From positions 483,944-547,943 of the IMG/VR virus record IMGVR_UViG_3300033145_003233: DNA of 64,000 nucleotides; one strand, written 5' to 3'. The notes under the pieces were generated by a model. That model was not told where the DNA came from, ran no database searches, and was given only the letters and a program-made list of their open reading frames with translations. The position numbers and the translations under genes were made by a program. Shown here piece after piece: positions 11,501 to 53,324 of the stretch (positions are counted from its first letter, which is position 1; each line of letters starts with the position of its first letter).

Positions 11501-14500
11501 TTTATATTCTATTGACTGAGTGAACTCATCAATAGCCCCCTCTAAGAACAAACTTACCTCTCTAGGAAGAGTTCTATAATCACCATATTGAGTAAACGAA
11601 TCTATAACCTTCCTAACTACAACATCTATTTTATTCTCTGGTATATCTGCATAAGAAAAATATTGCTCGAATTGTGTAATAACTTCTTTGATAGAAGCTG
11701 GGATTATCTTGTCAGGAAGCTCAGTGTATCTAAGATGTTGATTATATAACTCAATCGCCCCCTGTATAAAAGCAGGGACTCTATATTTGGGAAGCTGCTC
11801 ATATTTCATGTGCTGAACAAAACTTGATTTAGCATCTCTAACAAAAGTTAATATTTCTTCTGGAATATCTTGGATATATACAGCTTCTTGCTTGGTGAAT
11901 TTTTTAACATTCTCTACAGCCATCGTTATTTTATCAGATATCTCCGTCTGATAATCAGCATGTTGTATCATAGATGAAATAACATCGCTAATAAAGAAAT
12001 CAACTTCTATTGGGAAGTCTTTATATCTGGACTCCTGCTTATATTCTTGTATCACTCCTTTTATCGTAGCAGACACATCTTCAGGAGGTATCTCTTTATA
12101 TTTAACCAATTGATTTATATCATTTATGAATCCGCTAATAAAAGAAGGTATATTTTCTTCTGGCAAATCAGAATAAACTAGTCTCTGCTGATAAAATCTT
12201 AGCGTGTCTTTAACAAAAGTGCGTATTTTCTCAGATGGCATCAACGGATAAACTGCTCTTTGAGTTATAGATTCCATCAAATCAGTTACAAAGAGTTGGA
12301 CTTCATCTGACACAGGCTTGTATTCAGCCTTCTGTTTGAAATCTCTTATAATATTAATTATTTCTGCATGAACCTTCTCATGTGGGAATTGCTCATCGTC
12401 ATATTCAACATACTGTTTTAATCTATCTATTGCCCCACTCATATACCCAGGAATTTCTTCTGGAGGAACCTCTCCGTAAACTACCTTCTGATTCCAAGAA
12501 TTAATAATATTAGTTAACCATGCATTAGCCTTAGCCGGAGGCTTAATAGGATAATAAGCAGTTTGGGTAAAATCTGCCATAACATCCCTCACAAAGAATT
12601 GAACCTCTTGAGAAATTTTTTCTGGATATTGAGCCTCCTGTCTATAAGATTCTATAAATTTATCAACCTCCATATTGACTTTCTCTGGAGGGATAACAGT
12701 ATAAGAAGCATATTGTTTTATATTATTAATAAAATCTGTGACATACGTTGGGATCTGAGCAGGTGGTAAATCTTTATATTCCATAGATTGAGCATAAGAA
12801 GTTATAGCTCTTTTTATAAAAGCAGGTATCTTTTCAGATGGCAAGGTAGTATAAGAAACATATTGTAAAATAGATTCTTTTACCCCCTGCACCTCTCCAC
12901 TTATTTGCTTAGGAATTTCATCTCCATAAAGAGTATATTGTATAAATGAGTCCTTAATACCCCTAAGCATAACAGGGATTTTAGAAGGCGGAATATTAAC
13001 ATGCTCTAGATGTGGTCTAAACTTATTGATAATATTATCATACTGAACCTCTACCTCTTCCGGCATTTTTGTAACTTCTACAATATTCCTTGTAATCCTA
13101 TCTTTAGCAGCAGTTTCTCCGCTATATGCCAAAAATAAATCATCCGTATTTAATCCGAATTCAATTACTTCTCTTTTTACAGCATCTACCCCAGATGTAA
13201 TCCCCTCATAATTAATCAATAACTCTTCTAGAGACAATCCCTTATCGGTGGCATACCTTTGCAAAACTTTTGTATAACCCACAATAATCTCTTCAACCCT
13301 TTTAGGAGGTTGCTCTGTTAGTTCTGCCACCCTATATATTTCAGAAACAAATCCAGAAAATATCTCTGGAACCTTCTTAGAAGGTAAACCAACTTCATCA
13401 GCAAATCTTTTAATTTCTCTAGTAAAACCAGAATAACGAGTAATAACTTCCAGTGGAGGAAGATTTTGCTCTTTAGCCACTCTCATTATCTCTTTTGTGA
13501 AACCAGTATAATAAGTCAGAACCTTTTCTGGCGGTAAATTATATTCCTTAGAAATCCTAATAATTTCTTTAGTAATATTCTGATAATAGATTTTTAACGG
13601 ATCTTTTACTATTTTTTCTTCTACTGCTCCCTCAATGCCATCCATTGATACTGCCATGCCCTGAAATAATACTCTCATAAATCTAGCTTGCTGTTTAACT
13701 TCGTCTGTAATGTTCTTTTTAAATTGAGCTTCTTTTCTTTGCGAAGAAGAAATATCTCCCTGAATTTCTCTCTGACCAGCAAGTTGAGATTGTGCTAAAA
13801 ATAATGCCTTTTTTCTATGAGCCACAATCTCTGTTTCAAGTTCAACTGCCTTAGATCTCCATTTGAAAGAATCTGCACCAGCTGTCCCTAATACTCTCAT
13901 GCGCTCATTTAGAGTAGTTAACATGCCCTCTTTTAATGTTGCCGCTTTCAACTCATCGTATGCCATTATCTCTCTGGTTCGAGATATTAATTCTTGCATA
14001 CGAACTTGATCGATAACTTCTACGCCAATCTTTTGAATAGCTTTAAAATATTTCTCCCCCTCTTTGGACAAATTACCAGTAGATAGAATTTCTGCCACAT
14101 CTATTTCTTCATCCATTTTTACATATTTCTCTAAATGGATAATTCCTTCTGCTTTTGTTTTTTCAGAAGCCGACAAAGCAGTAAGAGCTTCATGAAATTT
14201 AAAAGTTGATGATGGAGCAACTGCCTTAGGTTGCATTGGCCCAGGGGTCACATCTTCTCCCCTAACAGTGGCTTTAATCTCTCTCCCAATACCAACATCC
14301 CTTAAGTTTCTTAAATCGCTTATATTCACAACATAGACAGGAATAGCATCACGTTTCTCATTAATAATAAGACGAGAAGCAGTTCCCTTAGGAGCTTCTC
14401 TTAATGCTCTAAGCCATTTGCTATCCATTTTTACTGGAGGCAATTGAATTTTTTGAAATCCTGGCCCCATTTGAAAACCACCAGTAGCTCCACCAGCAGC

Positions 14501-17500
14501 AATAGATTGAGCTATATCTCTCGTTGTGCCTACATCTCTTGGGGCCATCTCTTTTTTAGTCTTATTAGCCTCGGAAGCTATTTGTCTTACAAATTGATCG
14601 GTAACATGGGACTCTAAAGCTGCTCCTTTTAGATATTTATTAGCACCAACCGCTAACGTCTCAGCATGACCTGCCATTGTAGCCTCAGCCTGTCTACTCA
14701 AACCTTCTAGTTGATCATAAAATACATCTCTTTCGGCTCTTTCAAATTGCCTCCATCCTCCAGTTTCCTTAGTCACTCCCATTCTTGAAGCAGTTAAGGT
14801 ATCATAAGCCATAGCCCACGCATCTCTTCCACCAGATGCTATAAACTGACCAAACTGATTCATTTTAACAGCGCCGACTCCAACATTTTCTGCAATATCT
14901 CCAAAAGCATCCCGAAGAGCAAAAGCACCACTAGCTGCTGATCTAACTGATCCCTCTAATCTCATAATCTGAGCAGTATTTTGCTCAGCATTCATTATAA
15001 TTTCACTAAATCCTTCTGCCCCTACATTCATAGCAGAAATAACAGAAATCCACCTATCTCTTAAAGCTTTTACAGCTTGTGCTTGACGCATTTGAGCATT
15101 AGCTATCCCTGTTTCCAACTCAACAACCTTCGCTTTTGCTCTAATATTTTCAGAAGATCCATCTTTAAATTTTCTAATAATTGCCGTTTGCACTGATAGT
15201 TGTTTTTGTAACACATCTATATTTTTTCCTTCTGCTTTATATGCCCTTACCCTCATTTCAGCGCTAGCCCCAACACCGATGGCATAATTATCTGCCAATT
15301 GAACTAAAACACTAGACTTTTGAGCAACAGCTTCAGTATATTTTAACTGATCTTGAAATATATTACCCGCCTGCAAAAGAATCTTTGTGCGTTCAACAAC
15401 TTTTTGATTTATCCTATCTTCTGCTTGAAGAATAACCTTATCAATAGCCGCCTGATCAAGAAGCCCTACCTTCATATCAACAAGAGTTTGAAACATGCCC
15501 TGTTCTTGTTTGCTTCTTTTTTCATTAGATGCTTCTTTCCTTGCGTCTAACCCTTCTGATATTTTCATTAATGCAACCATATCCTGTTGAGCAACAATCT
15601 CCTGGTTCAAGAATAACAATGATTTTTCAATTGCTCCAGTCATGACACTAAAATCTATTTGTCCAGTGATGGACATTTTTTCTATAATATTACTAAGATA
15701 AGATGTTTGAGCTTGATACAAACCATTAATAGCAGCTACAACATCCTTTTGTTTCTGAACTACAGTAGTTATGCCATCCATTCTACCTGCTATAACTGCT
15801 TGCAGCCTAGAAAGTCGCTTATACTCATCATTTCCTTCTTCTATAGTTTCAACGATCTCATGTAAATTTTTAACTCTTTTCTGACCTTTCTTAATAATAG
15901 TTTCTGCTATTCTAATTTGAGGAAGGTCTAAATCTTTTCTTCTAGTCTCAAGCAACGTCTTGGCCCTATTGATCTTCTCCTGCTCTTGCTCCATAACTCT
16001 TTGAACAGCATCTGTTGAAGTCTCTTTGCCGACTAAATCTACATCAATATCAAAATATTTTAACTTAAATTTGCTAAGAATCTCTTTATCTATTTTTTTT
16101 CTCTGCTCATCTAAAACTGTATTGGCATCAATTAACTCTGTAGACACTTGCCTATATAGGGCGTTAATAGCCTTTCCTCCTGTTACGGCAGCGATATCCT
16201 CATCTCTCACTTTTTTAATATCAACTTGTAGATTTTTGAGTTCTGCTGCTTTTGTGCCCATTTTTGCCAATTCTTCTTTGAAATCTGGAGGGATCTTTGC
16301 TTTTACCTCTGCCTCAATTTTTCCCTTTTTGCCAAGCAAATTTTCTATGCCGATACCAACTGACTTCCATTGGGTAGCTGCTCCAATTATACCTCCAGCT
16401 ACTCCCCCTAAAGCAGTCCCGATACCTGGAGCTATAAAAGTTCCTATAGTGGCTCCAATTTTAGCCCCACTAGCAAGAGCCAATCCAGCTCCCGCTAGAC
16501 CTACTGCTCCAGCGGCTTGACGATGCCCTCCTCTTTCTAATGCTTCTGCTCCTCTACCTGCTGCCCATGAGCCTCCAGCTAATAGACCTCCTGCTCCTAG
16601 TCCCTTAAGGGCGGTTAAGCCTCTTGCTTTAAATAATCCTTGGAGACCCATTGGGGCAATAGCTGGTACAGGTGCTTTCAAACGCCCGACACCTTTTGTC
16701 GAGAGTTTTTGCATAAGTGCCATTTCTTTAAGATTTACAACTTTAACTCTCACAGGAGCACCAACTGCCCCAGTGACCATTCCGAGCATTCCTCTACCCT
16801 TACCAAATGATCCAGCCCCACCTGCCTTAGCAGCTTTAGCTAACCCACCACCGCCACCTAATAAACTACCTGCCATACCCCCGCCAAGAGTAGCAATAAA
16901 TCCACCAGCAATTTTCAAACCGGCATAAGCAAGACCAACCTTCCCCAATGTTCCAAGCCACGACTTAGTTCCTTCTCTAATTTCTCTTAAGAAATCAGTA
17001 ACATGGGCTAAGTAAGGTAGAATAGACTCCCCAACTGCCAAACCAACAAACTCAATTTGACGTTGAAATTCTTGAGCAGCTTGAATATTCCTTTCCATCT
17101 CTCTTTGACGAGTTTTATCAGAACCTATGATCTGTTGATTACCACTTATATAGGAAGAAAGTTGCTTATATTGAGCATCTGTAATTTTGCCAATAAAATA
17201 TAAATTTCTTATTCTATTTTTAAGTGAGATCTTTTCTGCTGCATCTAAAGTGGCCCCCACTTTAGATAAATTAGCTAATCCCATAGCCAATGATGGATAT
17301 TCTTGAGAAACAGCAGCTATAGCACCTTGCATTTTTCCTATAGCCTGAGCATTAGCTCCAACAATATTCCTAGTTCTTTTTAGAATATCCTCAAATTGAC
17401 TAAGAGATATAAACCTCATACCTGTCTGAAATTCATCAAATAATTGAATCGTCTCTTTTCTAGTAAGACTTACTGAAGAAGCTACTCTTGCTAAAGTTCC

Positions 17501-17944
17501 TTCTAAATAAGACAGCCCTATCCCCAAACGATTAACACTAGCAGACACATCAAGAAGTGATTTATTATAATCTACTGTTAGACGAAGTGCCGACCCAAAA
17601 CTAGCGGGCATAACCATATGCTTAAAAGCTGCCTTTGCCTCAGCACCAGTTGACCGTAACCCACCCCTAAGATTTTCTATAGCCCTTGTTGTTGCTTTTA
17701 CTTGTTTTTGTTCTCGCTTTAGACCATCAATAGCAATCTTATTTCTTGCTTTATACCCGCCTATAAGCGTTTTAACAGCCTTATCTAGACCCCCATATTG
17801 TATCTTTAAAGCATTTACATTACGGAGTGCCTCTTTCTCTTTGTTGCATATTTCTTGAAAGGCCGCTGCTGCATCTGGAACCCCAGACACTGCCAGCATT
17901 ATTTCTAGTCTATTAAAAAATTCTTGTTGTTCTTGATCGGGCAT
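2525..17944 (-). CDS. Giant tape-measure-like protein, 5139 aa
   Basis: Follows tail tube and G/GT chaperones. N-terminal ~1100 aa is helical with a Gly/Ala-rich amphipathic segment (GAKIGATIGTFIAPGIGTALGGVAGGIIGAA), followed by long internal repeat arrays. Confidence 0.75.
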   Translation of the reverse strand: MPDQEQQEFFNRLEIMLAVSGVPDAAAAFQEICNKEKEALRNVNALKIQYGGLDKAVKTLIGGYKARNKIAIDGLKREQKQVKATTRAIENLRGGLRSTGAEAKAAFKHMVMPASFGSALRLTVDYNKSLLDVSASVNRLGIGLSYLEGTLARVASSVSLTRKETIQLFDEFQTGMRFISLSQFEDILKRTRNIVGANAQAIGKMQGAIAAVSQEYPSLAMGLANLSKVGATLDAAEKISLKNRIRNLYFIGKITDAQYKQLSSYISGNQQIIGSDKTRQREMERNIQAAQEFQRQIEFVGLAVGESILPYLAHVTDFLREIREGTKSWLGTLGKVGLAYAGLKIAGGFIATLGGGMAGSLLGGGGGLAKAAKAGGAGSFGKGRGMLGMVTGAVGAPVRVKVVNLKEMALMQKLSTKGVGRLKAPVPAIAPMGLQGLFKARGLTALKGLGAGGLLAGGSWAAGRGAEALERGGHRQAAGAVGLAGAGLALASGAKIGATIGTFIAPGIGTALGGVAGGIIGAATQWKSVGIGIENLLGKKGKIEAEVKAKIPPDFKEELAKMGTKAAELKNLQVDIKKVRDEDIAAVTGGKAINALYRQVSTELIDANTVLDEQRKKIDKEILSKFKLKYFDIDVDLVGKETSTDAVQRVMEQEQEKINRAKTLLETRRKDLDLPQIRIAETIIKKGQKRVKNLHEIVETIEEGNDEYKRLSRLQAVIAGRMDGITTVVQKQKDVVAAINGLYQAQTSYLSNIIEKMSITGQIDFSVMTGAIEKSLLFLNQEIVAQQDMVALMKISEGLDARKEASNEKRSKQEQGMFQTLVDMKVGLLDQAAIDKVILQAEDRINQKVVERTKILLQAGNIFQDQLKYTEAVAQKSSVLVQLADNYAIGVGASAEMRVRAYKAEGKNIDVLQKQLSVQTAIIRKFKDGSSENIRAKAKVVELETGIANAQMRQAQAVKALRDRWISVISAMNVGAEGFSEIIMNAEQNTAQIMRLEGSVRSAASGAFALRDAFGDIAENVGVGAVKMNQFGQFIASGGRDAWAMAYDTLTASRMGVTKETGGWRQFERAERDVFYDQLEGLSRQAEATMAGHAETLAVGANKYLKGAALESHVTDQFVRQIASEANKTKKEMAPRDVGTTRDIAQSIAAGGATGGFQMGPGFQKIQLPPVKMDSKWLRALREAPKGTASRLIINEKRDAIPVYVVNISDLRNLRDVGIGREIKATVRGEDVTPGPMQPKAVAPSSTFKFHEALTALSASEKTKAEGIIHLEKYVKMDEEIDVAEILSTGNLSKEGEKYFKAIQKIGVEVIDQVRMQELISRTREIMAYDELKAATLKEGMLTTLNERMRVLGTAGADSFKWRSKAVELETEIVAHRKKALFLAQSQLAGQREIQGDISSSQRKEAQFKKNITDEVKQQARFMRVLFQGMAVSMDGIEGAVEEKIVKDPLKIYYQNITKEIIRISKEYNLPPEKVLTYYTGFTKEIMRVAKEQNLPPLEVITRYSGFTREIKRFADEVGLPSKKVPEIFSGFVSEIYRVAELTEQPPKRVEEIIVGYTKVLQRYATDKGLSLEELLINYEGITSGVDAVKREVIEFGLNTDDLFLAYSGETAAKDRITRNIVEVTKMPEEVEVQYDNIINKFRPHLEHVNIPPSKIPVMLRGIKDSFIQYTLYGDEIPKQISGEVQGVKESILQYVSYTTLPSEKIPAFIKRAITSYAQSMEYKDLPPAQIPTYVTDFINNIKQYASYTVIPPEKVNMEVDKFIESYRQEAQYPEKISQEVQFFVRDVMADFTQTAYYPIKPPAKANAWLTNIINSWNQKVVYGEVPPEEIPGYMSGAIDRLKQYVEYDDEQFPHEKVHAEIINIIRDFKQKAEYKPVSDEVQLFVTDLMESITQRAVYPLMPSEKIRTFVKDTLRFYQQRLVYSDLPEENIPSFISGFINDINQLVKYKEIPPEDVSATIKGVIQEYKQESRYKDFPIEVDFFISDVISSMIQHADYQTEISDKITMAVENVKKFTKQEAVYIQDIPEEILTFVRDAKSSFVQHMKYEQLPKYRVPAFIQGAIELYNQHLRYTELPDKIIPASIKEVITQFEQYFSYADIPENKIDVVVRKVIDSFTQYGDYRTLPREVSLFLEGAIDEFTQSIEYKDAIPETMDAILTGAQKSFVQNILYSELPDSQIPGFVKQYLKYLRQSVIYRELPPRSVVGVMHNFETAFDQWAIYQEDVPKEVQAFIRGSKAAFVQRVTYEDFPPEIIKGIIKDSMSALRQVVDYREVPPRNIPASIRNVMEDLTQYATYEDVPKTRFEVILRRLKESFTQYAMYPDLPKEAQIFLDGSIEAFAQRATYLKLPEEEVPGLISDYIKSFVQHIYYDEIPPENIPAYIQEIIKEFRSTVQYQDLPPERVETFVENYVSSFRQEAVYKEAPPIYLHTKIYDAIDSFNQFVKYGILPPEEVAMKLSGWRDQFVSKIVEENIPPEKSALIFTGWRDILKSELEIEENPFDVLVKVFSRVEEATTDVAIRLQQSINAAASNLGIRSDQFVMDYSPIYKIIEDISDSADVSIDSVFDTFRQLNDIILSVGIPDVDAGSIKKVQATLIRQSSAIFESINKQIEALDNVDIQVIFDALPDVVSMLAKSEPEKDVDLDISKFPDEIKAKLLGIPDAEILLTGIAETIKVPVKQGDISGLEVVAYYEVAEQFVKIPTIVEGEVKPSILQFPEQDVYNLFTELNNLITSVYVPKVDPQRIRAIEDTLRKQSAEIFRSIEQQIEGLNDEQVRVIFKALPEVVSMMVESEPTPLVKLDISSFPDGIAADLQDIPRAEIKLTEIARIIRVPVEEGDLSGVEVKAYYDIAEQIIKLPTQIEGDIKPSVLQFPEDDVVALFNRLNTLITSVYVPKVDPAHLAKVQDTFKKHSSAIFESLHEEIDGLKDTDVKVIFEALPTIISMMAKSEDPTKPVELDISNFPDEVRAKLEKIEEPMVKLEGIAKSIQIPARQNFSDLEIEAFYNIAEQVVDMPVVVQGQVDPTVLRFPEEDVMRIFERLNYVIASTYVPKVNLEEVKNIQETIKEQSSIIFKSIKDQIETLDDSDVEVLFRALPHTIAMTAKTPLTDPILLDISSFPGELPVELAEVPPVKTALTDIAETVRIPIVEGEMRGLEVTAYYKLLQEVIKIPAKVEGDIRIPILQFSDDDVYNLFNKLDTAISSIEIRDVDPDSIKKVQATLFKQSTAIFGSIEKQIQGLNNLEIDVLYEALPSVVSMLAESKPEQIVDLDISKLPGTIEGRLEKMPDAVFALTEIAKTIKVPVKDGNLRDIEAEAYYDVAELIVAMPTKVRGEPSAAVLRFPDKIEKVLLKTKVIEKPEEAHVIIKSLEDVYKVTADIRIPDMLPVVARNLGYDSEIEFESDFSPVFNSIKEMSMATGRSVDEIFDAMKSWPNKIDNIFSDFNIDERRIDKIKRASEIKMEDIYISLGKAFSHNIMAINEINPQLNKVVDKVFEKTFDDISSEDRQIIIKSIPEVLELYGDPENIERKVKTVVEDAPEKIGLRAIDVPTVTAILSQVPREVALDLDKQNLRGLEAEAYVKNLVTEFSILADWSKLPTEVVFKLPQVLDSILLNAQLPQEVDVSTILDLTEEAYHVVGDVEGTDRRPSVLITNVDKVFEVELPTPDLTKELNMMATSMNISTTKLLTDFGGLNRKITDISLATSQPFDDVLARAIRFSSSLDDRLKRVGKSWGLDDTQIIKIKEAAVDSAQRISNVLKTKFEGLADITLPNNVSALELIAKNVPEFIELTAKDEFDKKYRYDILLQGMPEEVTMQGVTKRIPRVEFEVEELSDAILVPIDDRELDWKGVKAYVEAIKLLYRKEDVTIGEPPELAVLFNMDKMNVPAEKATAVLGNLQKFYEKIKEVDIEITDTPTIILQNIAKSYVQPDVQTPVGEMTDLLDSLAESMMIVDASDKAKFVNSFDELNTAASNMSLKMGISISDIADLYNKFAGEKAPELNVDFGKIVKDSFADIKLPREKFDDFKEQMVFSASKILSSISGQIQDGLPPDIVTVIIKEMPHLFTAAVDVKNRPERAEIVLKDVEKYLEYEAGTEINTSSIKDIFDSISQAIYEPVGKLGLVETRIDEYKNRVLDLVEKTLLGINAENIGVIGKTAKYILNFSEVDKLINETISELRVDFEEIIDPDKIDKGVLMSSLIKFHQDFETYIRSPQKMLSAIHIPEGVESIDIGLPMDKLARLFPNIEVEINEATRALNLDKQQFVKYFSEFYRSVNDFSEETGVSISNFLESIIGTATSAEEIVEGVGKVPVITLDIGKKNYDRIYNELKSIVDAMEIETKDVRFKDLLVNFGNVYSSTRDIVANTQAFINKAEKTSSFLQELSIDGILSKEEINRIREGIYTSPDFDFDQMNGAIDRLGEFGKTVQEATNNVSDMKNVYDGLKGSGSMSIKEIRVAHGVVAKAQKDLGIAQEDFDDELGNIISRFLSQYKKSASEQKGSVMALASVQLEQEVSKSAGRKFAMGREEEIIAEGGKPGLVASGLSTEYLDKAKEIQAPYERKTREIQDVDKVIETKNREMTHLENILYAPDTGIITLEGKLDLTGKSEAARQKVRDEGAKIAAQIQTLREQADKVALMIREEPREEKEIEKYEGVPPGFTIGAPSLKAIRRKKIKTQREKKTPSYMYLQAFKQYEESGSDEDEGVLVRMERETGVGVGKEWSREVHAKTIKEGEASGDIIKNLSDELIADAAANREQWEKNRRVYDSKIEGLKDQPPFQYAQAAEAGRDDTKRKLETVYSEREGLFAQRSRLQIEQEKIGRTEVATMPAPQTIIVPSEDTARIAVVPPEAPAAPGAVREVEGYVDWEKRREREQEKIVAKRGVGPKVSRRRGARGREAGEGRRTRLDIMMGREYQPRPSRSERRMEHRLSRDDGRRGGGRTIRPTRRMPPRIGEEEEFGRWEQLMPPKMFGLLRSGEAMPGEREAPQEVKVAVGREAPQEVKVAVGREAPQEVKVAVGREAPQEVKVAIEREALQEVKVGADLVGRPGREGVTSEVSARGQQLLIPTESVYGTDPTKPVFSEAEKGLISAPTSANTVTVVLENARFDINISGLNDLSTKVAKGINTALHEAVPGMMSETLGTYSA
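2847..3020 (-). repeat. 36-bp tandem repeat, about 5 copies, encoding REAPQEVKVAVG near the TMP C-terminus
   Basis: Unit ctaccttaacttcttgaggagcttctctcccaacag is near-identical in the central copies; flanking copies are degenerate. Confidence 0.95.
7920..10210 (-). repeat. Five ~155-aa protein-level repeats inside TMP
   Basis: Units start PDVDAGSIKKVQ / PKVDPQRIRAIE / PKVDPAHLAKVQ / PKVNLEEVKNIQ / RDVDPDSIKKVQ, spaced ~465-470 nt. Each has QSxxIFxSIxxQI, ALPxxxSM, DISxFP and AYY motifs. Boundaries approximate. Confidence 0.85.
10490..13590 (-). repeat. About 40 degenerate ~25-aa repeats inside TMP with a ~99-aa higher-order period
   Basis: Recurrent QxxxYxxxP every 24-27 aa; about every fourth unit carries E[VIA]xxF[VIL]. 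Boundaries approximate. Confidence 0.8.
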
Positions 17945-19348: not shown

Positions 19349-20455
19349 TTATGCACTTGCTTCATATGTGAAGACAGTATTAGCAAGGGTAGTAAGCATA
19401 GGATCGCAAACACCAGTTCCAGCTGCTGGGAGAGCATGCCAGTTTACAGTTGATTCAAAAATATCGTTAGTAAGACTCATTTCTTCAATTTCAAACACGC
19501 AGTTAGGAAGAGTCACTCCGAATGTAGCAGCACTACATCCTTCACCAGTTCCTTCCGTAGTGAAACCGAATTTGACTTTAGCAGATTCAGTACAGTTATC
19601 TTCATTACTTAATGCCACATTACCAAGAATTGGATGACGACCCATCAATACAACATTGCCAGTAATCTCTCTTTTTCTAGGAGCAATTGCCTGTGCAAAT
19701 AACTTCGTATTTAATGTATAATACCTTTCTGCATCATTATTGATATTAGCTTCAAATGATCTTACATATTGACCTCCGATAGGGGCAGTAAGCCTTCCAC
19801 CAGAAAGTTCTACTCTTGCATCATTCCAGGTAATAATTCTAGTCGTTCCAATTGTTGCTGTTTCAGAAGTAGAAGAACCTTCACAAGCATCTGAGCCATC
19901 AGAATCAGCACTTCTTGCAGGTGCATCCATAGCTCCGATAGTTTCACGGTTAACTCCGATAACATCAACAGAACAAGTAACAACATCAGATTGTGAAACA
20001 GCAAACTGCCAAGTATTAACAATACAACCCGTATATCTAAATTCAGATTCATTGTGAGGCAGTGAATTAGAAGCAGCATATTTTACATCAATGTCAAACG
20101 GGCTAAGAACACCAGCATTAGTTCTAGTAACAGCGTATCTGTAAAGAATTTCAAACAAAGTGTAATCTTCGCCAGTAGGAACTTCATAAACAGCTGGGAA
20201 AGCAACAGTTCCATCAACTAGTTTTGGGCCTAACTGATAAACTGTTCTATCATAACGACTGTCTACTACGTCCGGTTTCGTGATTTCCTGCGTTAAATTG
20301 ATATCTGCCGTTGTAGCTCTGATAAGGTAGTTTCCATGCTGAATGGCACTAATACCATCCGAGTTTCCCTGAATAATACCTCCCAGAACTCTAACGAAGC
20401 CTACAAAGCCCATATAAGCAGGTGGGGCATTCCAAAAATTATGAGGTAGAGCCAT
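19349..20455 (-). CDS. Major tail tube protein, siphovirus-like
   Basis: 368 aa, beta-rich; VRSFEANINN...KREITGNVVL pattern typical of tube proteins; precedes chaperones and TMP. Confidence 0.75.
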   Translation of the reverse strand: MALPHNFWNAPPAYMGFVGFVRVLGGIIQGNSDGISAIQHGNYLIRATTADINLTQEITKPDVVDSRYDRTVYQLGPKLVDGTVAFPAVYEVPTGEDYTLFEILYRYAVTRTNAGVLSPFDIDVKYAASNSLPHNESEFRYTGCIVNTWQFAVSQSDVVTCSVDVIGVNRETIGAMDAPARSADSDGSDACEGSSTSETATIGTTRIITWNDARVELSGGRLTAPIGGQYVRSFEANINNDAERYYTLNTKLFAQAIAPRKREITGNVVLMGRHPILGNVALSNEDNCTESAKVKFGFTTEGTGEGCSAATFGVTLPNCVFEIEEMSLTNDIFESTVNWHALPAAGTGVCDPMLTTLANTVFTYEASA

Positions 20456-21189: not shown

Positions 21190-22110
21190 TTATCTCAACC
21201 TAGCTTCGTCTCTTCTCAAGAACTGTATTTCTTCTTCTTCTGCGAACCAGCTAATCTTAGCTGCCTTCAATAATTCTCCCTTATGAATAGTCCCATATTG
21301 AATATTATCTGGCCATGAATTATATATAAATCTCTTAGGAACTATCACAGAAGTATCATCACTATCAAAATCAAATGGTACACAATCTTTTAGCTTAATA
21401 GCTGTTTGTGCTGGATCATCATCTTCTGTATACCAATAAGTCACCCAATTTTCTTGAGATTCAGAATCATCTTCTATTATTATCCTTCTATAGTTATTAA
21501 CTAAAGATCTATCAGTAATCCTAATTACCGTATCTCCTGCCGTTACATCTTCAGTCAAAGATGTAACATCATAATCATTAACTAACGGCATAATATTTCT
21601 TTTTAATCCTAGCTGTATGGTATCTGCCATATTTAATAAAAACCTATAACCCTTTTCATGTGAAGATGCCTGAACCAATACATTAACCTCTACCTGAAAT
21701 CTCTCCTTTGTGCTTTCTAATGTAAACCATTCAGAACCCCTACTAATACCATTCACAGTTATAGCAGGGAAACGAGAAATAACATCTGGATCTCCTATAT
21801 ATATACCCTGAACAAATTGTTCATATATAGTTTTAATTAAAACAGTATTCTCTGCCGTTGTCCAATCATTAAGAATCGGAGTAGAGAGGGTGATACAATG
21901 CGTAATAAGATCTATAGATAAAATAACAAGACCTGTCTCATAAACCGAGTTATTTTTAAGCATAACCTGATCTCCGACACTAAATCTACGAGCATTTCTA
22001 ACCGGGATAACAGTAGCTCCTCGCGATAAATTGGATTGGATTCTACTAGTAGTATTAACCCACTTATGTATGATCCTTCTTATACTATCTAGAACTTCTT
22101 CCATAGCCAT
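21190..22110 (-). CDS. Tail terminator/neck-like protein with inserted beta domains
   Basis: FPAITVNG...FQVEVNVLV...LLNMADTIQLGL resembles tail-completion proteins; position in neck module. Confidence 0.55.
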   Translation of the reverse strand: MAMEEVLDSIRRIIHKWVNTTSRIQSNLSRGATVIPVRNARRFSVGDQVMLKNNSVYETGLVILSIDLITHCITLSTPILNDWTTAENTVLIKTIYEQFVQGIYIGDPDVISRFPAITVNGISRGSEWFTLESTKERFQVEVNVLVQASSHEKGYRFLLNMADTIQLGLKRNIMPLVNDYDVTSLTEDVTAGDTVIRITDRSLVNNYRRIIIEDDSESQENWVTYWYTEDDDPAQTAIKLKDCVPFDFDSDDTSVIVPKRFIYNSWPDNIQYGTIHKGELLKAAKISWFAEEEEIQFLRRDEARLR

Positions 22111-22115
22111 AATAA

Positions 22116-22382
22116 TTATTTCCCTAACACTTTCTCTATTTCTCTTTTAGCCATCTCATCTATGATGTCTTGTTTTTCTATTTCAAGCTCTAGTGGAGGA
22201 GTATCCATAGGCTCTTTATTCAGACATTGATCTGCCAAATGATTCACCCATGCTCCCTTATTATCTTTAGCCAGTCTTAATTTAGAACTATTCATATCTT
22301 TCCCTACAATCTTTCCGTCCATAGATTGAACTTGGAGAAGAATATTATTAAAAAAATCAGCCATTTCTGTTTTATTTTTCAT
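22116..22382 (-). CDS. Hypothetical protein
   Basis: 88-aa ORF tightly packed in the operon. Confidence 0.55.
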   Translation of the reverse strand: MKNKTEMADFFNNILLQVQSMDGKIVGKDMNSSKLRLAKDNKGAWVNHLADQCLNKEPMDTPPLELEIEKQDIIDEMAKREIEKVLGK

Positions 22383-23110
22383 TATTGTTTAATCTGCTTA
22401 AATTGTTTCGGTATCTTTCCACCTGTTGGCAATGCATATTGTTCAACAAGATTAGGATTATAAAATCTACGACCTATTCTTTGATGACCATGCAAAATAA
22501 TACTACCATTTAAAATATCATTTAGTCTATTTTCTGCCAACTCTCTCAATTTATCTCCGAAACCAGAAGTATTAGGAGAACTTTCTGAAGAAAAATATTT
22601 ATCATATATATTAGCAGATGCTATTCTAGCAGATATGAATCTTATTGGAGGAGGATAAGTAACTCTCAAAATTCTAGTGTCCTCTCCAAAGAAATACTGT
22701 ATCTCTGAAACGGTAGCAAAAGTAGACCCATCTATTACTTCACCTATTTCATGCCTTTCTTCTCTAGTCCCATCGGTCAATATAACCATATCTCCAGCTG
22801 CAAACGGACAATACTTTTCAAGAACAATATATGGATTATACTCATCTATTGATGAATATAATGAACTTTCAAAATCACATAATTCACAGAAAGGGGTTAT
22901 ATACAACTGACTTAAAGAACCATCTATTTCGCTATCAGCTAATTGAATATAATAATTTACATTATCTGTGCTTACCAAATTCTTATCTAAAACATTCCCA
23001 ACATTCATTAAATTTGAGAATGTGCCCAAACCATCAGAAGTAGCAGAAGTAGCAGTAGTCAATGATTGAGCTATAGTTTTAACTATATCATTTTCGGTAC
23101 AATAGCCCAT
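22382..23110 (-). CDS. Head-to-tail adaptor, DUF1320/Mu gp36-like, with insertion
   Basis: MGYCTxxDI...YIQLADSEIDGSL...Y..PF...IxxxIASANIY...AENRLNDI pattern. Confidence 0.65.
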   Translation of the reverse strand: MGYCTENDIVKTIAQSLTTATSATSDGLGTFSNLMNVGNVLDKNLVSTDNVNYYIQLADSEIDGSLSQLYITPFCELCDFESSLYSSIDEYNPYIVLEKYCPFAAGDMVILTDGTREERHEIGEVIDGSTFATVSEIQYFFGEDTRILRVTYPPPIRFISARIASANIYDKYFSSESSPNTSGFGDKLRELAENRLNDILNGSIILHGHQRIGRRFYNPNLVEQYALPTGGKIPKQFKQIKQ

Positions 23111-23119: not shown

Positions 23120-23163
23120 TAAAAAATAAAAAAGAAGCCATACCCTTATAGATATAGCTTCTT
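23120..23163 (-). terminator. Terminator after actin-like gene
   Basis: 13-bp stem AAGAAGCTATATC/GGGTATGGCTTCTT with G-U pairs, then a U-run on the minus strand. Confidence 0.7.
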
Positions 23164-23193: not shown

Positions 23194-24219
23194 TTATAAT
23201 TTCTTCTGAGAAATAATTGCCTGTGTAAGACAGCCCTTCACAACTGCATTCCTAGGATCTTTAGAACAAATTACATTTTTGATTTTAAATGGCAATTCCA
23301 AATCTTCTACAACAGACTCCACCTTACTACTAAATCCACTAGGGATTGCGGTTCCTCCCGCTATTACGATATCTAAAGGAGCCTCAAATTCACTCTTAAC
23401 TTTAGAAAATTTCTTAGCAAAATTCTTAAACACATATTCGATCATATTCGTATAATATGCATCTAAAGCAAAAATAACATCATCATCATAATCTATACTA
23501 TTAAAGTCTAACTTCGTTTCTTTAATATTCGTAACTTGTGATAAAGGCTTATCTGTATGCTCTGATACCTTTTGATCAACCCAATCTCCGCTCCTAGCAG
23601 CACTCATACCAACTACTGACAATCCCCTATATGCTAATACACAATTTACTTTTCCAGCACCAAAAGACATACCAATACCACTAAACGGAACTTTCTTTCC
23701 TCCCGCTTCTATAATAACTGGTTTTTCAGATAAAATTACAGCATGACCTTCTTCAATAACCTTAACGTTCCATCCCAATCTTTTAAACATGCCTTCAAGC
23801 CTGGCCTTATGAAACGTATTGTCAACAGCATTATCTACTGGGTCAGAAGAAACACACGTACAAACTAAAGACTTGTCATCAGGAGCCTTACCTATAGAAG
23901 ATTCTATCATTTTAGCCATAACAAGCATCTTCTTATCTTCTCCTTTATTTAAAACCCCTCCCTGCATAGGTCTTCTTAACTCAACTCTTCCAGGGAACAT
24001 CCTTGCCACTCTCATACTATCTTCCCCGATTACATAATAATGTTTACCATCGCTAACATACTGCCAGTCATTTTGCTCTAAAACCTGCTCTATGTCTTCA
24101 TCTGCCTCTAGCTCTACAAAAGCATTTCTTATTTCCTTAAGGTTTAAAGTCCCATCTGTAGCATTTTCTGCCACCTGAAAAAACATAGTGCCGCAATCGA
24201 CTCCATATACTTTACTCAT
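23194..24219 (-). CDS. Actin-like ATPase (ParM/MamK/FtsA superfamily)
   Basis: Phosphate-1 GVDCGTM, connect EEGHAV, phosphate-2 GMSFGAGKVN, adenosine IVIAGGTAIPSGF, connect-2 DPRNAVVKG. Confidence 0.85.
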   Translation of the reverse strand: MSKVYGVDCGTMFFQVAENATDGTLNLKEIRNAFVELEADEDIEQVLEQNDWQYVSDGKHYYVIGEDSMRVARMFPGRVELRRPMQGGVLNKGEDKKMLVMAKMIESSIGKAPDDKSLVCTCVSSDPVDNAVDNTFHKARLEGMFKRLGWNVKVIEEGHAVILSEKPVIIEAGGKKVPFSGIGMSFGAGKVNCVLAYRGLSVVGMSAARSGDWVDQKVSEHTDKPLSQVTNIKETKLDFNSIDYDDDVIFALDAYYTNMIEYVFKNFAKKFSKVKSEFEAPLDIVIAGGTAIPSGFSSKVESVVEDLELPFKIKNVICSKDPRNAVVKGCLTQAIISQKKL

Positions 24220-24481
24220 TATGCTCTCTCCTCTTTTTCTCTAAATTTAATTTTCTTTTTCTTCTAACCTCTTTCGTAAAATCACTTTCTCCGACCCTAA
24301 TCTCAACTTCATGCCCCGCGCCCTTTAGAAAAAGAACCTCATAAAGAGTACGAACCACACTATCGCTTTTATCTAAATACATATTAATACACTTTTTCAT
24401 GCCCTCAATAGACATAAATTCAGGAGAAATTCCATTAATTATTATAGGCTTTCCCACTATGTCATCTTCCATATCTTTCAC
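24212..24481 (-). CDS. Hypothetical protein
   Basis: 89 aa; overlaps both neighbours, consistent with translational coupling. Confidence 0.6.
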   Translation of the reverse strand: MKDMEDDIVGKPIIINGISPEFMSIEGMKKCINMYLDKSDSVVRTLYEVLFLKGAGHEVEIRVGESDFTKEVRRKRKLNLEKKRREHNE

Positions 24482-24696
24482 TCCAAATCTAAAATTTCAA
24501 ATCTATTCTTTATTGGATTATCTTCTATCTCAGCATCATCTAAATTCTCTTTTTCTATTTCTTTTATCCAATCAGAATATCCTCCTCTAACCGGCTCCAC
24601 CATTGCTTCTGCCAAAGCCGACCGGCCCTCTGGGGTGCTCAGCGCCTCAGATAGTATCATTTCCTTATCAGCGTCCGATAGGGGAGTAATTGGCAT
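24478..24696 (-). CDS. Small protein with capsid-N-arm-like N-terminus and C-terminal NRFEILDLE tag
   Basis: 72 aa; PLSDADKEMILSEALSTPEGRSALAEAMVEPVR, then an acidic linker and the tag. Confidence 0.7.
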   Translation of the reverse strand: MPITPLSDADKEMILSEALSTPEGRSALAEAMVEPVRGGYSDWIKEIEKENLDDAEIEDNPIKNRFEILDLE

Positions 24697-24697: not shown

Positions 24698-25042
24698 TTA
24701 TACCCCTAATTCTTTCATACCTGTAATTATCGACTCTAAATCTAAAATTTCAAACCTATTATCAACTGGGTCATACTCACTATTAACTACACACTTCTTT
24801 GCTTTCTCTGATAGATTTTCTTTTTCTTTATCTTGTTTTTTCATCATATCTTTAGTATAAAGATAATAATACGGAATTTTATTCTGATATAAAAATTGCC
24901 TAACTAAACCCAAGTCTATTCTCTCTTTGTCAAAACTATAATATGGAAAAACTTTTTGAAAATCCAACTTATTCACCAGCTTTCTTATCATTCTTCTACC
25001 AGGAGGACAATTCAAACTATATTTATACCTTTTTATTTTCAT
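24698..25042 (-). CDS. Hypothetical protein with near-C-terminal NRFEILDLE motif
   Basis: 114 aa; YDPVDNRFEILDLE followed by 11 more residues. Confidence 0.65.
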   Translation of the reverse strand: MKIKRYKYSLNCPPGRRMIRKLVNKLDFQKVFPYYSFDKERIDLGLVRQFLYQNKIPYYYLYTKDMMKKQDKEKENLSEKAKKCVVNSEYDPVDNRFEILDLESIITGMKELGV

Positions 25043-25614
25043 CCCAGTAAATCCTCTAACTCATCTGCATTACTTAATATCGTATTTTTTTGCTTTTCTT
25101 CTTTATAATGAACAGATTTCACCTCTGTCCCTTCTACTATTTCATCGACCGCCCTAGCATTAATCTCTGCAAGCATTTCTTCGTCCATTTCTACCTCCTC
25201 ATCTTGTCTTTCAGATTGCCCACCTTCCTTTATTATTATAGTTTCTTTATTAGCAGGCATAGCCTCCAATAAAGTTTGAGTCATTTGTGTTAAATCTTGA
25301 CTAGACATCCCACCTTTAGGTTGCTTATCCAATATCTCCTTCATAGTGTCTTTCATCTCTCCTATAATATCTTGCTTCATTTTATCTAAATCGGAAGATT
25401 TAGGATCTTTTTCTGTTCTAACCGGAACATTCAACGCATCTTTAACTCTTATTTCTATATCACCTTTTTTCTTCGCCATTAATAGATGTTTAGAAGCTTC
25501 GGATTTAGCTCTCGGCATTATCCTATCTAAATCAATAGCCTGCCTAGGCCCTAATGACAGAGCTATATCTCCAAGAGTTATATGTTGTTTTGTTTTATTA
25601 ACAATAAAAAACAT
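25039..25614 (-). CDS. Hypothetical protein
   Basis: 191-aa ORF in operon. Confidence 0.65.
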   Translation of the reverse strand: MFFIVNKTKQHITLGDIALSLGPRQAIDLDRIMPRAKSEASKHLLMAKKKGDIEIRVKDALNVPVRTEKDPKSSDLDKMKQDIIGEMKDTMKEILDKQPKGGMSSQDLTQMTQTLLEAMPANKETIIIKEGGQSERQDEEVEMDEEMLAEINARAVDEIVEGTEVKSVHYKEEKQKNTILSNADELEDLLG

Positions 25615-25616: not shown

Positions 25617-25787
25617 TTACATTCTTCTAGTTTTAGGATATGGGCTAGCGTCTGCTGTTAATTCTATTTTACTCTCTTTTTTACATTCAGGGCACATATA
25701 ATATATTTTACCATCTCTAAAATTTATTTCTATATTAGGGTCCTTATCATGATTCCTACAATGAGAACAAACCACAGTTATATTCAT
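25617..25787 (-). CDS. Small zinc-ribbon protein, 56 aa, below ORF-track cutoff
   Basis: Manual translation MNITVVCSHCRNHDKDPNIEINFRDGKIYYMCPECKKESKIELTADASPYPKTRRM; two CxxC; fills the gap between neighbours. Confidence 0.7.
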   Translation of the reverse strand: MNITVVCSHCRNHDKDPNIEINFRDGKIYYMCPECKKESKIELTADASPYPKTRRM

Positions 25788-26350
25788 ATATCAATCATTT
25801 CACTATTAAGCATATCAATCATTTCATCATCTTCTTTATGTTTGATTTTTCTTTCAACAGTAACTATCGTATCGTTATGAATTCCTCCATGTGGAACTAA
25901 TAAGATTTCTACTATCTCAAAACCCCTTGTTTTACCTACCCCATTAGAATTCCACCCACAACTAATAACGATGCCATTATCTTTAATCACTCTTGATATT
26001 CCATCTCTAGCTTCACTCCAAAACGTAGTCCTAGTATTATCTGCGGTCGATTCTAATCCGATACCATCATAGACTCTTTTAACCTGAGTAGGGGAATAGG
26101 GGGGATCATAAATAATACCATCAGCATACTTATCATCAAACATCTTTAAAAACTTTCTGGCATCGATGTGATAATTTGTGTCCATTTTGGGATTTAAATC
26201 GTTGGTTATAGTAGCTGGGCTATAACGACCTGCAAAGGGATCTAACCATATTTTATTTCTATCCACGTACCTTGCAAGCAACTCTTTAATCGGTTTTATC
26301 TTAAAAGTCCATTTATTAGGCATGTTCCATATTCTTTTTATTTCCATCAT
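25784..26350 (-). CDS. DNA N6-adenine methyltransferase
   Basis: SAM-binding LDPFAG and catalytic DPPY motifs. Confidence 0.85.
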   Translation of the reverse strand: MMEIKRIWNMPNKWTFKIKPIKELLARYVDRNKIWLDPFAGRYSPATITNDLNPKMDTNYHIDARKFLKMFDDKYADGIIYDPPYSPTQVKRVYDGIGLESTADNTRTTFWSEARDGISRVIKDNGIVISCGWNSNGVGKTRGFEIVEILLVPHGGIHNDTIVTVERKIKHKEDDEMIDMLNSEMIDI

Positions 26351-33141: not shown

Positions 33142-33387
33142 TTATCTTGCGTGGAAATGATAATGTTCAGGGATTGCCCTTCTTTTAAAATCCAACTCGG
33201 CATCAGGGAAATACTCTTTGGCATGATCCACCATAACTTCAACTTCTTCTTCAGTAGGAAATACATGACTTTTCCATACATACATAGGAACTTCGCACTT
33301 CATACAATCCATCACGACAAAATCATCTTCTTCAAAATGCCATGTGGTTACTTTTTCTAACTTACATAATCTACATTCTTTAGCCAT
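33142..33387 (-). CDS. Small HIT-like protein
   Basis: N-terminal CxxC and C-terminal HYHFHA histidine triad. Confidence 0.6.
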   Translation of the reverse strand: MAKECRLCKLEKVTTWHFEEDDFVVMDCMKCEVPMYVWKSHVFPTEEEVEVMVDHAKEYFPDAELDFKRRAIPEHYHFHAR

Positions 33388-33575
33388 TACAAATCCAATA
33401 TATCTAATCTATTGAGAGGCTTGGGTTTTCGTCCTCTTTTTTTCTTTTTAGATAAAACTATTTTACCATCTTTAACGGTAATCTTAAAGTCCTTCTCTAA
33501 TTCTTTCAAATCTGGAAGAGAATTAAGCATATTTTTCAACAACTTATTCCTCTCTTCTGTAAACTCAAAACCCAC
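33387..33575 (-). CDS. Small protein ending NRLDILDL
   Basis: 62 aa; stop overlaps next start. Confidence 0.65.
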   Translation of the reverse strand: MGFEFTEERNKLLKNMLNSLPDLKELEKDFKITVKDGKIVLSKKKKRGRKPKPLNRLDILDL

Positions 33576-50860: not shown

Positions 50861-50904
50861 TATTCTCACCTATTATTTTAAATAATATCTTTATTTTTTA
50901 ATCC

Positions 50905-53312: not shown

Positions 53313-53324
53313 TATTTTTCCTAT

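Follow-up and report, generated by a model that had tools for sequence, protein, structure and literature searches.

An actin homologue of the volactin family located directly in front of the neck and tail genes in a clade of huge bacteriophages

The cytoskeletal proteins of bacteriophages are known almost only as tubulins, namely PhuZ and TubZ, and PhuZ belongs to the nucleus-forming jumbo phages of the Chimalliviridae. The few phage or prophage actins known are partition-type proteins, and the actin-like proteins of mobile elements (ParM, AlfA, Alp7A, and AlpC of prophage CGP3) segregate or position DNA with the aid of a small adjacent adaptor. Outside of these systems, the founding member of the volactin family, HVO_2015 of Haloferax volcanii, forms dynamic filaments in vivo and affects cell shape (PMC10869688), the magnetosome actin MamK is a filament that positions large cargo, and closteroviruses use an Hsp70 homologue for virion tail assembly. 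Two broad reviews of jumbo phages (2021, 2026) and the recent phage G genome paper do not mention actin homologues at all. In the present study we analyzed a window of 64,000 nucleotides, which is the last 64 kb of a 547,943-bp phage genome (IMGVR_UViG_3300033145_003233), because an earlier note made from the sequence alone had pointed to an actin-like ATPase with intact motifs, located directly upstream of a head-tail adaptor gene in an operon with four small ORFs, two of which carry an RFEILDL tag.

To verify this observation, we first examined the ORF itself, which is located at 23194..24219 on the minus strand, starts with ATG and encodes 341 aa. In a Pfam profile search the protein matched Volactin (PF25216) with an E-value of 4.4e-59 and 201 bits against a cut-off of 35, covering profile positions 3-321 of 321. 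A search of the genome with this model gave 200.5 bits, and Haloferax volcanii was among the four control genomes that gave a signal, of which one passed the cut-off. The AlphaFold (AF2) model has a mean pLDDT of 96.1 and a pTM of 0.93. In fold comparisons this model matched MamK, BeeR, MreB and F-actin with Z-scores from 25 to 29.5, the best match being MamK in its filament form (Z 29.5, rmsd 2.8 Å over 297 residues), followed by BeeR (28.5) and MreB (about 27). A family profile searched against PDB sequences likewise gave MamK first (E 8e-16), and then BeeR, MreB and FtsA, with E-values of 2e-8 to 6e-10 for MreB/Mbl and BeeR. No Hsp70, sugar kinase or ParM/StbA family was found in Pfam at E < 0.1, nor among the best 60 of 144 PDB matches listed at E ≤ 1. 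The protein cannot be assigned to the MamK or MreB families, since it scored only 22.4 bits against a cut-off of 400 for NCBIfam NF040964 (MamK) and 14.5 bits against 293 for PRK13927 (MreB), gave no hit to Pfam MreB (PF06723) at E < 0.1, and was separated in a tree from the MreB sequences of five bacterial genomes by a long branch. The match is more than a chance event, as we found 496 homologues at E ≤ 1e-3 and 731 clusters at 50% identity.

The motifs of the actin fold could be located as phosphate-1 (D8-x-G10-T11), connect-1 (E156/E157-G), adenosine (A-G288-G289-T290) and connect-2 (G329). However, the phosphate-2 motif reads S185-F-G187-A-G189, in which the usual Asp is replaced by a Ser. 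This Ser is nearly invariant across the whole family and is therefore a family trait and not a sign of decay, although it may mean that the ATPase kinetics are unusual. Residues D8, G10, T11, G187, G189, G288 and G289 are invariant in 83 diverse homologues. Several homologues carry inteins in the phosphate-2 region, as is often seen in conserved phage genes.

The gene downstream of the actin gene (22382..23110, minus strand, 242 aa) encodes a probable head-tail adaptor with a Mu gp36/DUF1320-like N-terminus. The evidence consists of three weak signals that agree with each other but cover the N-terminal third only, namely phrog_195 (E 1.5e-4), Pfam Mu Gp36 (E 0.012; 16.2 bits, below the cut-off of 24.7) and, with the family profile, the DUF1320 chain 8rka_B (E 0.028). 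This gene is followed by genes for a conserved 306-aa neck/tail assembly protein, p306 (21190..22110, minus strand; phrog_1082, E 1e-6), and a tail tube protein (19349..20455, minus strand; Pfam Phage_tube_2, E 7.3e-14; phrog_290, E 8.8e-15). After the tube gene and two small ORFs in chaperone position, there is a 5139-aa tape-measure-like ORF (2525..17944, minus strand), which has a Gly/Ala-rich N-terminal part, repeats and no Cys, and which is conserved in position but gave no family hit. No capsid or portal gene was recognised near the locus, and capsid and portal Pfam models gave no hits on the whole genome. We therefore prefer the term neck-tail module to the head-tail assembly module of the earlier note. 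A terminator-like hairpin with a 14-bp stem and a T-run (23132..23163, minus strand) lies directly after the actin stop codon and is followed by an AGGAG ribosome-binding site and the start of the adaptor gene. A similar hairpin is present in the nearest relatives (loci L002, L006, L007, L011, L015, L046 and L047 of our set of related contigs), whereas in many of the other loci the adaptor start lies within about 10 nt of the actin stop, an arrangement that we regard as an argument for co-expression with the structural genes.

To assess whether the position of the actin gene is conserved, we compared about 40 related huge-phage loci from IMG/VR. In these loci the order is a 56-aa Zn-ribbon protein (zn56), a 191-aa protein (p191), the actin, the adaptor, p306, the tube and the giant tape-measure-like ORF. 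When loci were instead collected independently through the adaptor gene, 35 of 35 had the actin gene directly upstream. The lineage that shares this synteny forms one clade in the tree (SH-aLRT 95), and it is separate from the bacterial clade. Over the 35 loci the actin has a median identity of 61%, compared to 45% for zn56 (found in 31 of 35), 44% for the adaptor, 42% for p306 (found in 34 of 35), 38% for the tube and 30% for p191, and it is the best-conserved gene of the block in 32 of 35 loci. Other viral volactin clades, however, are found in unrelated contexts with different upstream genes, so that the family as a whole has no single fixed role. One alignment of homologues was too diverse to seed a locus search.

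The first gene of the conserved trio, zn56, is located at 25617..25787 (minus strand) and encodes a protein with four Cys that gave only weak Zn-ribbon hits. The second, p191 (25039..25614, minus strand), encodes an acidic protein with a folded N-terminal domain (residues 1-58) in its AF2 model, a DIHxRTVxR helix and a conserved C-terminus, ELE(G/D)LL. By tblastn p191 was detected upstream of the actin gene in 27 of 35 loci, in some of them with lineage-specific ORFs inserted in between, and an ORF with the same C-terminal motif is present in the other loci examined. Searches of p191 for domains, fold relatives and ESM Atlas relatives gave nothing informative. Prediction of a complex between p191 and the actin gave ipSAE values of 0.60, 0.56 and 0.61 against 0.00 for the best control, with the interface on p191 residues 145-190. 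This amounts to weak support only. The mark was reached by 58 of 80 solved complexes and by 2 of 110 mismatched pairs, but scores of 0.60 or lower were seen in only 7 of those 80 solved complexes and in both of the mismatched pairs that passed, so that a complex predicted at this score is more often wrong than right unless the prior is good.

The four small ORFs upstream of the actin gene in this genome encode 89, 72, 114 and 191 aa, of which only the last, p191, is part of the conserved trio. The 89-aa ORF (24212..24481, minus strand) overlaps the actin start by 8 nt with its end and has no homologue in the related loci. The 72-aa ORF (24478..24696, minus strand) ends in NRFEILDLE and has its only homologue in the closest relative, L006, and the 114-aa ORF (24698..25042, minus strand) carries NRFEILDL 12 residues before its end. 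A DNA methyltransferase gene with a DPPY motif (25784..26350, minus strand; phrog_11619, E 7.5e-49) is absent from the related loci, and all four of these ORFs are lineage-specific insertions, absent from most relatives. A 1028-aa ORF upstream gave no hits in Pfam, PHROGs or the ESM Atlas. The RFEILDL tag itself is real, but it is a genome-wide C-terminal tag on about 55 small proteins, mostly in clusters of small genes far from the actin gene, the motif occurring 55 times near C-termini and once internally. We considered whether the tag might be a DNA element such as a promoter, terminator or repeat, but synonymous codons vary freely at every position while the residues stay fixed, which rules this out and indicates selection at the peptide level. 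The tag is abundant only in the closest relative, with 25 copies at 85% actin identity, 1 copy at 73% and none in three relatives at 60-62%, although the actin is present in all of them. It also differs from the conserved p191 C-terminus. Two other C-terminal features were seen: an enriched WKDHPFINE ending, which belongs to one paralogous gene family and is not a tag, and a second motif (..LG) on structural proteins, with too few cases to call.

The host is bacterial, as judged from sigma-70-like factors encoded by the phage (four Sigma70_r2 matches, two of which are above the cut-off). An Asgard archaeal host had been suggested by a 7.6-kb contig that is 100% identical over the actin ORF and was binned in a 'Candidatus Asgardarchaeum abyssi' MAG. 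We judged this to be mis-binning, in view of the sigma factors, the hairpin plus T-run terminators, the AGGAG ribosome-binding sites, the LPS-type glycosyltransferases and an outer-membrane-barrel-like protein. Other homologues are binned in Clostridiales and Woesearchaeota MAGs. In a search for transcript evidence no sequencing run was listed for a 6.4-kb stretch, and only two marine DNA runs held 4% of the words of the gene.

Taken together, the observation made in the earlier note holds, whereas its interpretation is supported only in part. An actin-fold ATPase of the filament-forming branch in a conserved position is supported, and the two findings named beforehand as evidence against it that we could examine, an affiliation with sugar kinases or Hsp70 and a non-conserved gene position, were not obtained. 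A role of the tagged proteins as adaptors is not supported, and the conserved candidate partner is instead p191. In the explanation that we tentatively favour, without holding it to be more likely than not, the gene encodes a core, vertically inherited component of the neck/tail morphogenesis operon of a clade of huge phages (genomes up to about 550 kb), which most likely binds ATP and polymerises into filaments late in infection. In this view p191, whose gene lies directly upstream of the actin gene in most relatives, probably docks onto actin subdomains IA/IB and the cleft next to the C-terminal helix through its conserved C-terminal helices (DIHxRTVxR ... ELEGLL), which would leave its separately folded N-terminal domain free to hold a cargo or a regulator, and together they would organise, move or template proheads, necks or very long tails in the infected cell. 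Our analyses demonstrate the fold, the family membership, the conserved synteny and the unusually strong sequence conservation, and modelling lends weak support to the contact with p191, while polymerisation, the timing of expression and the cargo are inferred in the absence of experimental or expression data. Within the volactin family, dynamic polymerisation is known only for the archaeal founder. Capsid transport, factory organisation and long-tail assembly, as proposed in the earlier note, are likewise inferences, although a very long tail is at least plausible in view of the 5139-aa tape-measure-like ORF. The p191 protein could equally be a scaffolding-type protein, as it is acidic and helical with a conserved C-terminal peptide.

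Several alternatives have to be weighed against this view, each of which we consider unlikely. An actin filament that pushes or positions phage genomes or replication centres, with zn56 and/or p191 as DNA-binding adaptor, would agree with the arrangement of an actin and a conserved small partner, and with the predicted contact in the cleft region that ParR uses on ParM. However, there was no ParM/StbA similarity at any threshold used, no DNA-binding domain was recognised in p191, and around the locus we found only chance-size two-copy repeats plus the duplicated tag-coding segment, with no tandem array that would resemble a centromere. Moreover, the gene is fixed inside the neck/tail operon in every relative and is not near replication genes. 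About equally unlikely is a non-filamentous actin-fold ATPase that acts as an assembly chaperone or minor virion component, similar to the closterovirus Hsp70 homologue. Its position between a scaffold-like acidic protein and the adaptor would fit this idea, viral Hsp70 homologues are among the matches in the viral structure library, and many relatives carry a C-terminal extension ending in an acidic-hydrophobic peptide that resembles the p191 C-terminus and could be a common docking signal to a third structure such as the prohead. On the other hand, Hsp70 sequence similarity and a substrate-binding domain are absent, the closest structures are all polymerising actins, and the family founder polymerises.

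Slightly less likely still is a cytoskeleton that remodels the host, changing cell shape or envelope growth as MreB and volactin do for their own cells, so that the cell can hold very large particles with tails possibly near 0.8 micrometres. Bacterial genomes do carry their own volactin-family paralogues, one of which is fused to a Wzc-type polysaccharide co-polymerase, and the window encodes the outer-membrane beta-barrel-like protein and many glycosyltransferases. Nevertheless, no membrane-targeting helix is evident in the window's copy, the linkage is to neck/tail rather than envelope genes, and the phage lineage is separate from the bacterial one. The least likely possibility is that the RFEILDL-tagged proteins are cargo adaptors riding on the filament. 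Two tagged ORFs do lie directly upstream, and C-terminal peptides are how ParR binds ParM and how FtsZ binds FtsA, but the genomic distribution of the tag, its absence from relatives that keep the actin, and the inserted nature of the tagged neighbours argue against it. A more far-reaching version of the favoured explanation, which we regard as possible but rather unlikely, is that a widespread clade of huge phages builds its own actin cytoskeleton, with p191 as dedicated adaptor, as an integral part of the virion assembly line, for example to carry or align proheads and to template tails approaching a micrometre, while the sub-lineage studied here separately sorts about 55 small proteins through a shared C-terminal peptide (R-x-E-I-L-D-L) to an unknown receptor.

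Here an actin homologue is the most conserved gene of the neck/tail operon in a globally sampled clade with genomes of roughly 350-550 kb, and in some members it even hosts inteins. If it polymerises and works in assembly, bacterial viruses would have recruited actin-based intracellular organisation for morphogenesis, there would be a testable handle on how cells of about a micrometre assemble particles with tape-measure proteins of more than 5000 residues, and the volactin family would extend from archaeal cell shape to bacteria and their viruses. Compared to volactin itself, the phage protein belongs to the same sequence family and shares the actin fold, but it is encoded by a phage of a bacterial host, is fixed in a neck/tail operon and has a candidate dedicated upstream partner, and a role in cell shape is not implied. 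MamK (5ljv, 5jyg) is the nearest solved structure, yet the magnetosome context is lacking and MamK has the phosphate-2 Asp where the phage protein has Ser. MreB, Mbl and BeeR are similar in fold, but no membrane-binding element was seen in the phage protein. With ParM/ParR, AlfA/AlfB, Alp7A/Alp7R and AlpC/AlpA it has in common that it is encoded by a mobile element, with a small adjacent partner weakly predicted to bind through its C-terminal part, but no sequence relationship was detectable, the partner lies upstream, centromere repeats were not found, and the locus is structural rather than a replication or partition locus. The closterovirus Hsp70h is also an actin-fold ATPase encoded within a virion-assembly gene set and appears among the fold matches, but it belongs to the Hsp70 branch, has a substrate-binding region and comes from an RNA plant virus. 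The closest functional analogy, for moving capsids or organising the infected cell, is provided by the phage tubulins PhuZ and TubZ, which are cytoskeletal polymers encoded by jumbo phages, but which have a tubulin fold, are GTPases and are not part of a tail operon; the system inferred here would be a functional analogue of PhuZ built on actin.

The virus record of 547,943 bp is rated as complete by CheckV, and almost all of the genes in the window, its last 64 kb (483,944-547,943), lie on the minus strand. The ORF at 23194-24219 of the window (minus strand) encodes a protein of 341 aa that matches the Pfam family PF25216 (Volactin) with an E-value of 4.4e-59 and 201 bits against a cut-off of 35, the match covering profile positions 3-321 of 321. 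No other actin-fold family was detected at E < 0.1, and the protein had neither a match in PHROGs nor a direct sequence match in the PDB. To place the protein among the known actin folds, we built an AlphaFold2 model on the basis of 83 diverse homologues (mean pLDDT 96.1, pTM 0.93) and compared it with solved structures using Foldseek and VIA-align. The model was placed among the filament-forming actins, the best match being MamK in its filament form (Z 29.5, rmsd 2.8 A over 297 residues), followed by the BeeR filament (Z 28.5), MreB/Mbl (Z about 27) and F-actin (Z about 26). A profile of the family was also searched against PDB sequences, which returned MamK at 8e-16, BeeR at 6e-10, MreB at 2e-8, FtsA at 4e-7 and EutJ at 6e-4, while actin scored about 0.02, and no Hsp70, sugar kinase or ParM appeared among the best 60 of the 144 matches at E <= 1. 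The NCBIfam models confirmed that the protein is neither a MamK (22 bits against a cut-off of 400) nor an MreB (14.5 bits against 293). The nucleotide-binding signature is conserved and consists of D8-x-G10-T11, E156/E157, G187-x-G189, G288-G289-T290 and G329. The one departure is that the phosphate-2 Asp is replaced by a Ser (S185), but since this Ser is nearly invariant across the whole family it represents a family trait. The observation in the earlier note of an actin-like ATPase gene at this position is therefore confirmed.

In a collection clustered at 90% identity we found 496 homologues at E <= 1e-3, of which the best 120 are all full length and 63-90% identical, many of them being located on contigs of 200-550 kb. 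An exhaustive search of representatives at 50% identity identified 731 clusters, 181 of them at E <= 1e-30. Some homologues, including P0121, P0124 and P0129, are about 700-750 aa long because inteins are inserted at the phosphate-2 region (Volactin profile positions about 182-196), and these carry an Intein_splicing domain plus a LAGLIDADG or HNH endonuclease. Two published huge phages, LR745208 (485 kb) and LR756511 (595 kb), also encode Volactin-family proteins at 27-28% identity, but in unrelated gene contexts. Furthermore, copies with 28-32% identity were found in bacterial MAGs from Acidobacteriota, Thermodesulfobacteriota, Bdellovibrionota and Gammaproteobacteria (loci L078-L097), some of them on large chromosomal contigs. 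One bacterial-type protein, the metagenomic homologue P0219 of 1160 aa, fuses the domain to Wzz/GNVR and a ParA-like tyrosine-kinase domain, as in a Wzc-like polysaccharide co-polymerase/kinase, and in one deltaproteobacterial genome the gene lies about 4 kb from mreB. In a quick ML tree rooted on five bona fide MreB sequences, the family is separated from MreB by a long branch, the MAG copies form one clade (SH-aLRT 95), and the viral copies form several clades, with the lineage of the present protein and all other loci that share its synteny forming one clade (95). A different phage lineage (loci L005, L064, L066, L068, L070 and L073, belonging to another viral volactin clade) pairs its volactin-family gene with an upstream ORF of 72-85 aa that ends in W-(A/E)-I-P-x-F...K-F-G-K-K, and this may represent another actin/partner pair.

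Downstream of the actin gene, in transcription order, lies a probable head-tail adaptor gene, for which three weak but concordant signals were obtained (phrog_195, E 1.5e-4; Mu Gp36, E 0.012; DUF1320 chain 8rka_B, E 0.028). It is followed by an 88-aa ORF (22116-22382), a gene for a 306-aa tail-assembly-like protein (p306; phrog_1082), a 144-aa ORF, a tail tube gene (Phage_tube_2, E 7e-14), two small ORFs in the chaperone position, and a 5139-aa ORF at 2525-17944 (minus strand). The latter has no family hits, but it occupies the tape-measure position and has a Gly/Ala-rich N-terminal part, typical of tape-measure proteins, no Cys and C-terminal repeats. At the usual 1.5 A per residue, it would imply a tail of about 0.77 micrometres. 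Since searches for capsid and portal genes gave no recognisable candidates, the module is best called a neck/tail module. In about 40 IMG/VR loci with 55-85% actin identity the gene order is conserved, running from a 56-aa Zn-ribbon protein through a 191-aa protein (p191), the actin, the adaptor, p306 and the tube to the giant ORF. Four more distant loci (31-34% identity) retain the order actin-adaptor-p306, with an insert between actin and adaptor in one of them. Moreover, a search seeded with the adaptor gene alone recovered 35 loci, and all 35 have the actin gene directly upstream. In four loci (L018, L021, L026 and L036) an extra ORF of 240-275 aa is inserted between p191 and the actin gene, and a related peptide forms an N-terminal extension of the homologue P0104.

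We next compared the conservation of the proteins in this block over 35 non-redundant loci, using the proteins of the window as the reference. The median identity was 61% for the actin, 45% for the Zn-ribbon protein, 44% for the adaptor, 42% for p306, 38% for the tube, 30% for p191 and 29% for the giant ORF, and the actin was the best-conserved protein in 32 of the 35 loci. Constraint of this strength over the whole sequence is what filament-forming cytoskeletal proteins typically show, although the link to filament formation is an inference in this case. In the present genome, the actin stop codon is followed by a 14-bp hairpin plus T-run, an AGGAG site and the adaptor start. The nearest relatives keep such a hairpin, whereas in many others the adaptor start lies within about 10 nt of the actin stop. 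From this arrangement we infer that the gene is co-transcribed with structural genes. Upstream of the module, the regions 33584-34171, 35250-36182, 39418-40434, 43217-44041 and 49121-63113 hold accessory genes that encode a Macro domain protein, a patatin-like phospholipase, a LAGLIDADG endonuclease, a subtilase, five Laminin_G_3/pentraxin-like proteins, large glycosyltransferase/methyltransferase fusions and a collagen-repeat protein.

The earlier note had described four small ORFs in an operon with the actin gene, two of which carry an RFEILDL tag, and had proposed that the tagged proteins serve as adaptors of an actin filament. Of these four ORFs, only that for the 191-aa protein (25039-25614) is conserved, together with the gene for the 56-aa Zn-ribbon protein upstream of it. 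The 89-, 72- and 114-aa ORFs, as well as a gene for a 188-aa DNA methyltransferase, are insertions that are missing from most relatives. The RFEILDL motif is real, but it is not a feature of this locus. A six-frame scan of the whole genome identified 37 ORFs with the strict motif, 29 of them having it as the last seven residues. With the wider pattern R-x-[ED]-[ILM]-[LM]-D-[LIM], 55 of about 775 crude genes (7%) carry the motif within 20 residues of the C-terminus, 36 of them at the very end, and there is only one internal occurrence in the entire proteome. The consensus is (E/D)-P-I-x-(S/N)-R-(F/S/A/Y)-(E/D)-I-L-D-(L/I)-end. As synonymous codons vary at every position, selection acts on the peptide. 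The carriers are small (median 111 aa) and mostly clustered at 136-153 kb of the genome, those in the window being located at 24478-24696, 24698-25042, 33387-33575, 34481-34768 and 38292-38627, with further ORFs ending near 36217, 37066, 37273 and 38650. The tag is abundant only in the closest relative, the exact coding pattern occurring 25 times in the relative with 85% actin identity, once in the one at 73%, and never in three complete relatives at 60-62%. No paper in the literature collection searched contained the peptide. The tag thus appears as a recent, sub-lineage-specific sorting or recognition signal that could be a capsid-loading signal, a degron or a docking peptide, whereas the actin is far older and universal in the clade. 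On this distributional evidence, the idea that the tagged proteins are actin adaptors is not supported. Another recurrent ending, W-(K/R)-(D/N)-H-P-F-I-N-(E/G), is shared by about 12 tandem paralogues of 260-280 aa at 124.9-134.7 kb and 278.9-280.4 kb of the genome, but these form one gene family and the ending is not a tag.

A better candidate partner for the actin is p191. Proteins of this family have a conserved, confidently folded N-terminal domain (residues 1-58, pLDDT about 95), a variable acidic middle part, a conserved helix with the sequence DIHxRTVxR, and a C-terminus, ELE(G/D)LL, that is conserved across the clade. Co-folding of the actin and p191, each with its own alignment, gave ipSAE values of 0.60, 0.56 and 0.61 against 0.00 for all three controls, which amounts to weak support for a complex. 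In the calibration of this method the mark was reached by 58 of 80 solved complexes and 2 of 110 mismatched pairs, but with scores of 0.60 or lower it was reached by only 7 of those solved complexes and by both of the mismatched pairs that passed. Because our own alignments were used, these counts hold only roughly. The confident contacts involve residues 145-190 of p191 and, on the actin, residues 16-30, 47-58, 95-108, 136-147, 163-168, 176-178 and 321-339, which lie on subdomains IA/IB and the surface around the C-terminal helix. The conserved adjacency of the two genes raises the prior, but the contact remains a model. Fold and family searches with p191 returned no relatives, and repeat searches revealed no centromere-like repeats nearby. 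In the alignment of the actin with its relatives, most relatives have a C-terminal extension of 10-30 aa that the present copy lacks. This extension often ends in an acidic-hydrophobic peptide (for example ..AEILGE or ..DEMIG), reminiscent of the C-termini of p191 (ELEDLLG) and of the 88-aa ORF (EKVLGK), but there are too few cases to call it a motif.

With respect to the host, four Sigma70_r2 matches, two of which are above the cut-off, point to a Gram-negative bacterium. So do the hairpin terminators, LPS-type glycosyltransferases and a 327-aa protein (31434-32417, minus strand) that has no Pfam or PHROG hit but resembles outer-membrane beta-barrel proteins (Gcw_chp, OmpA_membrane and Phage_OMP clusters; TM 0.65-0.69). 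The nearest Atlas clusters of this protein are from Verrucomicrobiota and Planctomycetota, which is a possible hint to the host. A 7.6-kb contig (JBECUL010000084.1), which is 100% identical over the actin ORF, is deposited in a 'Candidatus Asgardarchaeum abyssi' MAG, and other homologues are binned in Clostridiales and Woesearchaeota MAGs. Since the phage encodes sigma-70-like factors, the former looks like a binning artefact rather than an Asgard virus, and we read the latter as binning artefacts as well.

Taken together, these data lead us to the tentative view, held at slightly less than even confidence as a whole, that a polymerising volactin-family actin, co-expressed with neck and tail genes, works with p191 in late morphogenesis or in the spatial organisation of very large virions. 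The parts of this view are not equally secure. The actin fold and the family membership are established by the analysis with near certainty, and the conserved gene order is shown in the loci compared. Polymerisation, on the other hand, is inferred and seems probable, and the inferred role in morphogenesis rather than in another process is about as likely as not, while the partnership with p191 rests on a weakly supported prediction. The interpretation in the earlier note, namely that of a filament with tagged proteins as its adaptors, is thus only partly supported. Among the other possible readings, ParM-like DNA positioning and a non-filament chaperone or virion component both appear unlikely, a remodelling of host cell shape slightly more so, and the model with tagged adaptors is the least likely of all.

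Two jumbo-phage reviews and the phage G genome paper do not mention actin homologues, and Gp506 of phage G is only a distant fold match to the present protein. Although the protein is a member of a known family, and although actin-like proteins of mobile elements are known, its obligate place in a structural operon of a huge-phage clade, its predicted dedicated partner and its extreme conservation appear to be undescribed.
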